In this document: positions 22,224 to 25,200 of the stretch, one piece after another
Position numbering within the stretch: position 1 is the stretch's first letter
How the letters are laid out: each line of letters starts with the position of its first letter
Assembly: GCF_006345805.1 (NCBI RefSeq)
Contig: NC_042999.1
Coordinates: 125,550,001-125,614,000, forward strand
DNA length: 64,000 bases
Direction of reading: 5' to 3'
Source: Octopus sinensis
Lineage: Eukaryota
Program-made: the position numbers and the translations under genes
The notes under the pieces: model-generated
What the model was told of the DNA's origin: nothing
The model's database searches: none
The model's input: only the letters and a program-made list of their open reading frames with translations

Positions 22224-25200
22224 CTGAAATTAGTTAAAAGATAAATAAGTGGTTATTAGAGAGGGGGGAAATGTCATAGTTTGCCTCGTTCTTTCAAGCT
22301 GTAGAATATGTTTGCATATACAAGCAGAAGATAGAATAGTCAATACATGTAGCAGAATACATTTATTTTTCTGAAACTGATGCTTCACTGCATTACTACT
22401 CAGCATCTAACAAACATGTGTATGTGCAGGTATACTCATTCACCTTCATACATATCCTCTCTGGTTTAGTCACATTACTATATAAATATACATAGACATA
22501 TATATATATATGCATACATACATATATATATATATATATATATACAATATGTACATATATCTACACATATACTCATATGTATGAGTGTGTAGATATATGT
22601 ACATATGTGTGTGTATACACACACACACACACAATGGATTTTATATATTTATTAAAGGGTTACACATGTTTCTGATAAATGGTGGAGGGGACTAGTTCCC
22701 TTGTATTAATCAACCAATCTATAGTTAATTGATTGGGAGTGGGGAAAGAGTAGTCTCACACTTTTATCTTCCTCAGAGCCACAAATAAAGTGATTGGCAA
22801 AAGACTGACAATTTTGGTCAAATTCCTTTCTTTTGGCAGTCAATCTATTTGTGGCTCTGAGGAAGTGTATTCTATTTCTTTTTTGTTTTGTTTCAATCGA
22901 TTGACTATGGATTGATTAATACGATTAAATTATGTCACTAGTTCCTTTCAACATTTACCAGAAACATGTGTGAGCCTTTAATAAATGTATAAAATCCATT
23001 ATCTGCATGTATCTTCAGCAATGTATCAGTTTCTCTTGGTAACTGTACCAGATTTGCAGTTGTTGAGTTTGGATTATCTGGATTCCTACATCTATCACAG
23101 GTCATATTTGTTAGCCTGGTGTATCTTCATTTACAAAGAGCTTATGGAGTATGTTATTAGGATTATCAATCCCTTTTTATTTTGATATATCTTAGAGATG
23201 AAGCTCTTTCAATAACTTCCTATTGTCTGGAAGATGATCAATGCATTGAAATAAGCTAACTGTTTATGTTACTCAAGAGAAAGCCCATAACCCACTGTTC
23301 TGAATTAACTCTTTCAGTATCAACTTGCTTGAGACTGCCCTTAGTTCTATGATACAAATTTCCTGTTTTAAGATGATCTAAATTAAAATGGTCAACCAAA
23401 TTTTCATGTCAATTTATGTTTCAAATACCAGAATAATAACGACAAACTTATACTAAATTCATCATTATTATCAAAATCAAGTGAAACAAAGGTAGTGAAT
23501 TTCAACAGAAATATAGTAACAAAAGGGTTAAAATTTCCCTCAAGTAACTCTACCTTCCATCCTGCTGACATCAATCATTATACTATACACTTCAGTTAAC
23601 CTGCCTGAAAATTTATCAATTCCACATTGTGTATAGGTCAATTAATGTTGAGGACTAGGATCCAGTTGTAAAATGCCTACCTAAATAAGTTAATGTAATT
23701 TTTAAATGTCATCAATTCCCTACAAGCAAGGATAGATATTAAAAAAATATTACTGAAGCAATTATAGTTTTTTGAACTGGATGATCAACAACAAGGGATT
23801 TAGAGAAAAGCAAATTATAAAATAAGACAGGACTAGATTGATGCTATACCTTAAAAATTAAAAGATAAGGTGAAATAGAGAAAAAAAAAAGAATTTTCAT
23901 GATGAGAATTTTATATTTCTGATGAATTTATTATAAAAGCCAGCTCCTAAAACATTTTATATATTAGTTAAAGGATTTTTGTTTTTCTGTTAAATAAGTA
24001 TATTTTTATATGGTTATCTTCTATCTTTTACTTGTTTCATTCATTGGGCTGCAGCCATGCTGGGGCACCACTCTGAAGGGTTTAGTCAAACAAATCAACC
24101 CTAGAGCTTAATTTTTTTTAAGGTCTGCTACTTGTCTTATTGGTGTCTTTTGCTGAACTACCAAGTTACAGGGATGTAAACAAATTAACACCAGTTATCA
24201 AGTGGTGGTGGTATGGATAAACATAAGCACAAAAACAGGCAGATACACACACACACACACCACACACACACACACTCTTCTGCAGTTTCTGTCAATCAAA
24301 TTCACTCACAAAGCATTGGTTGTCCCATGGCTATATCAGAAGACACTTGCCCATGGTGCCACACAGTGGGACCTGAAACTATGTGGTTGTGAAGCAAGCT
24401 TCATAACCACACAACCATAACTGTGCCTATACACACACACAAACAGAGTGCACATTATTTGTAGCAAGCTGTGCTTATATAGACATCCACACACATACCT
24501 TCTGGGGATTATTCACTTTGATTATTTGACTGACAGCTCCCTTGTTTTGGGCTGGAATGGCATTTCCTGACGGAGACAAGAGTTGCAGTTGGAATGACTG
24601 AAAAATTAAATAGTGAAAGTTGGGTTTAATATCTCTCAATGATTATCAGAAAAAAAGAGAAGAACATTAAGAACAGACACACACAAGAAAAGACTAAAAT
24701 AAAGAGAAAAGAGAAGTAATGCTGAAAAATTGATCAACATATACCAGCATGAAAAACTAGAAATCAAAAATTATTTGATTATGCAAACAGCTACATTATT
24801 AACACAAATTCTCAGTATTATGTTCTGAAAAGTGTTCTAGTAAATTTTATTTTTGTTTTGTTTTTTATTCTGATTCTTCACATATCTCTTTAAAAAAGTG
24901 TTGTTACAGACAGTCAACTGTCTATCTAAATGAAAAATTGACCAAAATGTTCTAATTGGAGAGTTTATCAATATTTACAGAGAGATGAATGAAGCTATGC
25001 TGTACTTGTCAATATGTTTATCTACTTTCTTAGAGGATATATTTTTCATTCAATGTCAATTGAGGTTTATTGTTTAATACATACTTTAAATCATACAAAA
25101 GTCATACTGGTTGATTCTAGAAAAAATATATTCTGAAACCAATATCAGCATCAAGCATTTCTTATAGAATTTATTACAAATGTTCTTAAATGAACATTTC

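Follow-up and report, generated by a model that had tools for sequence, protein, structure and literature searches.

The foldback in the last AP1G1 intron

We analyzed a 64-kb stretch of Octopus sinensis DNA (contig NC_042999.1, positions 125,550,001 to 125,614,000; hereafter the window), which contains the AP1G1 gene on its minus strand and, inside the 2.3-kb last intron of that gene, a foldback that an earlier note had described as a divergent pair of hammerhead ribozyme motifs. The location in the last AP1G1 intron is upheld by the agreement of appendage-domain alignment, Pfam domain and splice sites: the final two exons align over their full length with the C-terminal end of solved structures of the gamma-adaptin appendage domain (E 8e-21), PF01602 is found on the AP1G1 trunk exons further upstream on the same strand, and the splice sites can be read directly (Table 1). 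When joined, the trunk exons match AP-1 gamma-1 proteins, with that of Lottia as the best named relative (90%); the AP-1 gamma-1 relatives listed for these exons are all shorter than 500 amino acids, and there is no cephalopod protein among them.

A repeat search shows that the inverted repeat spans 22623-23010, which is wider than the 22647-22986 reported previously, around a core element of ~365 bp (~22634-22999) bounded by ATGGAT and ATCCAT. The outer arms (22623-22696 and 22937-23010) are 74 nt long and 84% identical, and the inner arms (22768-22804 and 22829-22865) are 37 nt long and 89% identical. In a global alignment of the two arms, 134 columns match, 37 carry substitutions and 24 are gaps, corresponding to 78% identity over aligned positions; each arm is ~180 nt in length, and the two are nearly symmetric up to a center at ~22816, with a loop of at most 7 nt. 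The repeat search and the arm alignment therefore confirm an inverted duplication in which the sense motif reads outward in each arm. The best-conserved stretch between the arms is, however, the outer 20 nt (95%), which lies outside the hammerhead motif, and conservation in blocks continues well outside the hammerhead parts. No flanking direct repeat can be recognized as a target-site duplication, the only candidate being an ambiguous palindromic AT. In addition, the compound TA/CA microsatellite that abuts the foldback on its left contains a perfect 21-nt inverted repeat of its own (22547-22567 and 22586-22606).

The 388-nt AP1G1-sense strand of the foldback has a predicted folding energy of -153.5 kcal/mol, compared to -68.8 +/- 5.2 kcal/mol for shuffled sequences (z -16.4), and the plus-strand hairpin reaches -179.3 kcal/mol (z -18.6). 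The inverted repeat is certainly far beyond chance. Moreover, the foldback is ~130 kcal/mol more stable than an arm alone. Whichever strand is transcribed, the sense motif is located in the 3' half of the foldback and the complementary arm is made first; the first core box of the motif sits in the 37-bp central stem, with its 89% identity between strands. The duplex formed by the sense strand contains 17 A·C mismatches. Long intramolecular double-stranded RNA (dsRNA) in a pre-mRNA, of ~100 bp or more, is the usual substrate of promiscuous adenosine-to-inosine editing, and the predicted, imperfect ~170-bp hairpin is a plausible candidate substrate for ADAR.

The plus-strand hairpin is more stable than the AP1G1-sense hairpin by 26 kcal/mol. 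Transitions between the arms are also unevenly distributed, with a ratio of 17:4 (p 0.007) toward G·U pairs in plus-strand RNA and A·C oppositions in minus-strand RNA; restricting the count to well-aligned columns gives 9:2 (p 0.065). Regional base skews are negligible and too small to account for this bias, which could reflect strand-biased mutation, past selection on the structure of a plus-strand RNA, or small numbers.

Hammerhead-like boxes in the two arms

Read outward, each arm has the order GGCU-CUGAGGA-97 nt-GAAA-C-AUGU-G-U-(A/G)-A(C/G)CC-UUU-AAUAAA, with the two core halves at the base of an internal hairpin, and the strings and coordinates given in the earlier note for both copies match the DNA base for base in 22400-23250. 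Its description of the individual copies is accurate as well. The minus copy has the same sense as the pre-mRNA, its 11-nt core is complete and its GUA cleavable, and it carries one mismatch in helix I, where GGCU and ACCC form three of the four pairs; the type I invariant set (C3 U4 G5 A6 N7 G8 A9, G12 A13 A14 and A15.1-U16.1) is complete in this arm. The plus copy has a perfect helix I (GGCU/AGCC) and retains the invariant set save for a G at position 17, which makes its GUG non-cleavable. The length of helix I in both arms falls in the 4-5 bp of the minimal hammerheads described below. The putative cut, 3' of 22661 on the minus strand, would lie ~437 nt upstream of the last AP1G1 exon, in keeping with the ~440 nt claimed earlier.

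The helix III region, ACAUGUGU, is able to pair with itself through six Watson-Crick and two G·U pairs (RNAduplex -6.0 kcal/mol), and no second sense copy that could serve for dimerization in cis is present on either strand. Dimeric hammerhead variants were reportedly also found by Lunse et al. in 2017. Other ways of reading the arms were rejected. With ACAUGU as helix III, position 17 becomes a G and helix I no longer fits the register, the CUGAUAA on the opposite strand has no G8 if it is taken as the core, and a piggyBac-like reading, suggested by a TTAA next to AGGG/GCCT in both arms, is incompatible with arm homology that extends ~25 bp past the TTAAs.

At the base of helix II, the junction departs from the canonical form and is not alike in the two arms. 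In both of them, positions 10.1 and 11.1 are occupied by an A opposite an A (the A after CUGAGGA and the A before GAAA) rather than by a Watson-Crick pair, which is usually G-C. In the minus arm a G-C pair is located one step in from this mismatch, with an extra A between C11.1 and G12, and the basal stem has 6 bp (GAUAAA/UUUAUC) with an unpaired A on each side. The 5' strand of this stem is part of a 7-nt indel (AAGAUAA) that is absent from the plus arm. Because the A·A opposition is shared by both arms and the plus arm lacks the basal stem that closes helix II, the two cannot be combined into an intact ancestor, contrary to what had been proposed. The 97-nt spacer of the plus arm forms no closed rod (z -0.34), and of the 30 rod pairs compared between the arms one shows a compensatory change, five show one-sided changes and four are broken. 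Both spacers are exactly 97 nt long, yet their alignment takes five indels. An apical 10-bp hairpin, AAUCAAUUAA/UUGGUUGAUU, keeps all ten pairs in both arms by means of one-sided changes to G·U.

A three-way junction can be drawn from the minus arm, at an energy cost relative to the minimum free energy (MFE) structure. With helices I and III forced and the core kept unpaired, the hammerhead-compatible fold has a predicted energy of -21.6 kcal/mol versus an MFE of -28.6 kcal/mol (+7.0) for the minus arm, and of -15.6 versus -25.2 kcal/mol (+9.6) for the plus arm. The MFE structure of the minus arm pairs UCUGA with UCAGA and buries the core. As whole molecules, the arms fold no better than shuffled sequences (z -0.7 and -1.4).

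Efforts to establish how often such boxes occur by chance employed a loose descriptor, as implied by the earlier note, in which helix I has 4 bp and tolerates a single mismatch, and is followed in order by CUGANGA, a spacer of no more than 150 nt, GAAA, a single pair around a loop of 0-6 nt, U, and N. This descriptor finds 10 CUGANGA sites in the window, eight of which are unrelated to the foldback, and the two unrelated sites that we inspected lie in plain-looking sequence. Dinucleotide shuffles were rejected as a null since they yield 2.5 loose matches, as compared to 10 in the real window, and therefore understate the background; the eight unrelated real matches were taken as the empirical null instead, giving a background of about one match per 8 kb of this AT-rich DNA. 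Moreover, the presence of the motif in both arms counts as one event and not two, because the arms are copies of one ancestor. A strict descriptor, in which helix II must be closed by a stem of 6 bp or more, matches the minus arm only, with 0.09 matches expected per shuffled window. The claim that the pattern exceeds chance thus holds for the foldback, given its z scores, and does not hold for the loose hammerhead descriptor. A compact hammerhead-like motif is not found anywhere in the window.

The Rfam search that the earlier note had proposed gives no support for hammerheads. No family reaches its gathering score in the whole window, and no hammerhead family (Hammerhead_1, Hammerhead_3, Hammerhead_II, HH9 or HH10) is matched at E<=10 when the query is reduced to 1001 nt or to 356 nt. 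With Rfam silent, a non-canonical junction that differs between the arms and a loose pattern that is common by chance, the description of these boxes as hammerhead ribozyme motifs does not stand as a finding. The 356-nt query matches only generic microRNA (miRNA) hairpins, with 22-29 bits against cut-offs of 80-211, and the inverted repeat in the microsatellite matches mir-3149 with 52 bits against a cut-off of 100, which looks like an artefact of composition. We therefore discarded these sub-threshold miRNA families as artefacts of composition or shape, arising from the TA/CA microsatellite and the generic central hairpin.

Origin and activity of the element

We consider it likely that ~22634-22999 is the old, decayed foldback relic of two inverted ~180-nt structured units and is catalytically inert. 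On either strand, the complement would already have been transcribed as the sense motif emerges, and the first core box, GGCUCUGAGGAAG, would zip into the central stem of 37 bp with ~100 nt still to be transcribed before GAAAC. The intron would then be transcribed with its hairpin, folded, spliced out and degraded. We infer the absence of catalysis from this order of synthesis, which would lock the first core box in the central stem, and also because the plus copy has G17, because the minus copy combines a broken helix I with an A·A at the base of helix II, and because the hammerhead fold of an isolated arm lies 7-10 kcal/mol above the best fold. The earlier note had left two outcomes side by side, and they fare differently: silencing of the motif by pairing of the arms into a long dsRNA is what the fold of the sense strand predicts, and this silenced-relic branch fits the data, whereas the active-ribozyme branch is unsupported by folding and by the order of synthesis.

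Relatives of the element were sought in several ways. No copy of an arm beyond the two described here is found in the 64-kb window (blastn, word size 7), and none is present in a 20.9-kb locus of an Octopus vulgaris chromosome, which was reached via a homolog of a nearby reverse transcriptase and is a paralogous site adjoining a nuclear-receptor gene. Two family-specific patterns gave no matches in JGI metagenome contigs, the foldback translated in six frames had no match to predicted proteins at E<=10, and ARAGORN found no head derived from a tRNA, as would be expected of a short interspersed element (SINE). No coding sequence of a Penelope-like element (PLE), either reverse transcriptase or GIY-YIG, was found in the window; its only reverse transcriptase is of the type seen in long interspersed elements (LINEs), with RVT_1 and PHD domains.

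As to origin, we lean toward a DNA element of the foldback type, or one resembling a miniature inverted-repeat transposable element (MITE), or else a local snap-back inverted duplication, in which the hammerhead boxes would be coincidental. The near-perfect symmetry and the loop of at most 7 nt point in this direction, as does the fact that whole arms act as terminal inverted repeats, within each of which a palindrome is nested and conserved (all 10 apical pairs); the frequency of loose hammerhead patterns and the silence of Rfam are also consistent with coincidence. With foldback and MITE elements, and with ADAR-edited intronic inverted repeats, the element shares its non-coding character, a length of ~365 bp, two long arms, a tiny loop and a ~170-bp hairpin. 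It differs from foldback and MITE elements in that no target-site duplication is recognized and no further copies are present in the window or the O. vulgaris locus. A coincidental origin of the boxes must also accommodate the finding that the single strict-descriptor match lies inside the single large foldback, which makes up 0.6% of the window.

Another origin, which we entertain tentatively, is that the arms are 3' tails of a Penelope-like or retrozyme-like element, strongly truncated at their 5' ends and arranged head to head, and that both copies of a genuine hammerhead with a rod-like helix II have decayed. This origin is compatible with an element that is inert today. In the minimal hammerheads of PLEs, helix I measures 4-5 bp, an additional nucleotide separates A9 from helix II, helix II is compact with 6-8 bp, and palindromic 15.2-16.2 and loop 3 nucleotides allow a dimeric helix III; these ribozymes cleave poorly in vitro even as dimers, and pairs of them on opposite strands, with 100-700 bp in between, are reported as "dual min-HHRs" (minimal hammerhead ribozymes; Cervera & de la Pena 2014, PMC4209133). 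PLE insertions often include an inverted 5'-truncated copy, are biased to microsatellites and carry the hammerhead in a pseudo-long terminal repeat (Craig et al. 2021, PMC8557442), and Poseidon PAc provides a further comparison for the architecture of such insertions (PMC11167929), in which the hammerhead belongs to the pseudo-long terminal repeat or the 3' region and the target is a microsatellite or AT-rich DNA. The earlier view that inverted pairs of minimal hammerheads are a PLE trait is therefore supported by published work (PMC4209133, PMC8557442). The foldback is similar to the minimal hammerheads in the length of helix I (4-5 bp), in the additional nucleotide that follows A9, in a helix III that is vestigial and self-complementary, and in having a pair of motifs on opposite strands a few hundred bp apart. 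A weak intrinsic activity would be a further similarity.

Several observations weigh against our reading of the element as an inert foldback relic, and the minus arm makes a stronger hammerhead candidate than a chance hit. It has each of the 11 invariant core nucleotides as well as H17, its helix I of 4 bp is extended by another 4-5 bp and its helix III is tiny and quasi-palindromic, and an unpaired A follows CUGAGGA (that is, A9) in both arms, as in PLE hammerheads. The 97-nt spacer of the minus arm folds as a single closed rod (-24.3 kcal/mol, z -3.23), a result equaled by only 1 of 200 shuffles, and this rod ends at most 1 nt from both core boxes. The two halves of the core sit in the two most conserved blocks between the arms, and a dimeric helix III formed via self-complementary ACAUGUGU is possible on the basis of the predicted duplex. 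The inverted repeat, of the kind made by an inverted copy, with 3' ends pointing outward and a microsatellite or AT-rich flank, is consistent with a PLE insertion. The A·A at 10.1/11.1 is no absolute exclusion, because the axolotl retrozyme hammerhead HHR_Amex2 still cleaves with a U·U at the base of helix II (PMC7229834). Moreover, Rfam models penalize a 97-nt insertion, and their silence is weaker evidence than it appears. Finally, the foldback unit is known from one locus, with its two arms as the sole measure of box conservation.

The differences from PLEs are nevertheless substantial. Helix II in the foldback is a rod of 97 nt where PLE hammerheads have a hairpin of 6-8 bp, the A·A at 10.1/11.1 results from an additional A that separates C11.1 from G12, and there is neither a covariance-model match nor linkage to a PLE, nor another copy in the 64 kb and 21 kb of octopus DNA searched. 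Unlike known PLE insertions, both copies end at one central point, which is not expected of two independent truncations, and the foldback has no nearby reverse transcriptase or GIY-YIG sequence, no recognizable 30-40 bp "tail" and no target-site duplication; the sole reverse transcriptase in the window, as noted above, is LINE-like. In addition, the Naiad PLEs of cephalopods are old remnants and Naiads lack canonical hammerheads, with split "half-core" matches having been noted (PMC8557442). The head-to-head layout with a CA/TA microsatellite on the left would be no different in a foldback DNA element.

The remaining alternatives concern function. It is improbable that the plus strand is the relevant one and encodes a hairpin RNA, such as a precursor of endogenous small interfering RNAs or a miRNA-like precursor, in which pairing has been kept via G·U wobbles. 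The greater stability of the plus-strand hairpin, the transition bias toward plus-strand G·U and the negligible regional base skews are in favor of such a locus, but the numbers are small, strand-biased mutation yields the same pattern, the Rfam matches are limited to generic miRNA hairpins below threshold, and antisense transcription is without support.

Still less probable is the proposal that the minus copy makes some of the nascent AP1G1 transcripts cleave themselves upstream of the last exon. Its sense orientation, complete core, cleavable GUA and drawable three-way junction would permit such a reaction. Against this, the antisense arm is transcribed first, the first core box is part of the most stable, central stem, and the foldback is far more stable than the arm; helix I is interrupted by a central C·C mismatch, the helix II junction has an A·A, and helix III has only 2 bp, for which the PLE precedent needs a second sense copy that the minus strand does not contain. 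Poor cleavage by PLE minimal hammerheads in vitro, even as dimers (PMC4209133), also argues against activity, and cleavage of the nascent transcript, as put forward in the earlier note, is consequently unlikely. Type I hammerhead-like motifs in sense orientation within introns of protein-coding genes have a precedent in the amniote hammerheads HH9 and HH10, which are, according to the account of de la Pena & Garcia-Robles 2010 cited in PMC7229834, compact and ultraconserved (Rfam RF02275 and RF02277); the foldback motif, in contrast, matches no Rfam model. We would give very little credence to the most elaborate version, in which the arms are undescribed ~100-nt-rod hammerhead relics of a cephalopod PLE or retrozyme and the sense copy is conditionally active, gated by the foldback and released by ADAR or helicases so as to cut a fraction of transcripts.

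If the boxes do descend from a real ribozyme, they would extend Penelope-type hammerheads to cephalopods and introduce a variant whose helix II is very long and which is missed by current descriptors and Rfam models. A dsRNA-gated sense copy in a heavily editing lineage would, if true, be a test case for the interplay of ribozymes and editing. On present evidence, however, the element is an ordinary intronic repeat relic, and its main value is cautionary: in AT-rich sequence such as this, about every 8 kb contains a chance match to short core boxes with 4-bp helices.

Feature coordinates and other repeats in the window

Table 1. Positions of the AP1G1 exons, the foldback and its hammerhead-like boxes, and of other sites in the window.
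Feature	Position	Strand	Remark
AP1G1 penultimate exon	24597-24499	-	33 protein letters; splice sites read from sequence
AP1G1 last intron	24498-22224	-	GT...AG
AP1G1 last coding exon	22223-22122	-	33 protein letters, then stop
TA/CA compound microsatellite	22470-22633		abuts foldback left end
Left arm	22634-22816	-	outward sense is AP1G1 pre-mRNA sense
Right arm	22817-22999	+	outward sense is antisense to AP1G1
Minus arm, helix I 5' strand GGCU	22780-22777	-	sequence read
Minus arm, core box CUGAGGA	22776-22770	-	sequence read
Minus arm, 97-nt spacer ("helix II")	22769-22673	-	closed rod
Minus arm, GAAA	22672-22669	-	sequence read
Minus arm, helix III C, AUGU, G; then U16.1	22668, 22667-22664, 22663; 22662	-	sequence read
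Minus arm, A17	22661	-	putative cut 3' of it; sequence read
Minus arm, helix I 3' strand ACCC	22660-22657	-	one C·C mismatch with GGCU; then UUU
Minus arm, AAUAAA hexamer	22653-22648	-	near outer (3') end; sequence read
Plus arm, GGCT	22853-22856	+	sequence read
Plus arm, CTGAGGA	22857-22863	+	sequence read
Plus arm, 97-nt spacer	22864-22960	+	no closed rod
Plus arm, GAAA	22961-22964	+	sequence read
Plus arm, C, ATGT, G, T	22965, 22966-22969, 22970, 22971	+	sequence read
Plus arm, G17	22972	+	non-cleavable; sequence read
Plus arm, AGCC	22973-22976	+	perfect 4-bp helix I; then TTT
Plus arm, AATAAA hexamer	22980-22985	+	near outer end; sequence read
Unrelated loose-descriptor sites	9741(+), 14385(+), 25829(+), 43038(+), 53703(+), 42368(-), 23022(-), 17592(-)
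HGLDGSTGV repeat sites	~7719-7988(+), 10450-10893(-), 32195-32485(-), 50869-51150(+), 59157-59486(-)

The LINE-like reverse transcriptase mentioned above is located within an AP1G1 intron at 29929-31900 on the plus strand, where a frameshifted reading frame matching Pfam RVT_1 is followed by a PHD-type zinc finger. Its best named relative is a hypothetical protein of Octopus vulgaris, with 89% identity over half of the query.

Positions 1 to ~3700 of the window consist of a very long compound microsatellite of the TG/TA type, which is of low complexity and open in six frames. Mobile-element-like open frames are present at 11623-12018(-), 17458-17880(-), 37863-38459(-) and 8003-8296(-). A Pfam search of these four frames at E<=0.01 gave nothing significant save a weak match to DUF6451; by eye, two of them resemble fragments of DNA transposases and two resemble C-terminal fragments of reverse transcriptases. 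A dispersed repeat with the pseudo-translation HGLDGSTGV... occurs at least five times, in both orientations, and is probably an abundant SINE-like element.

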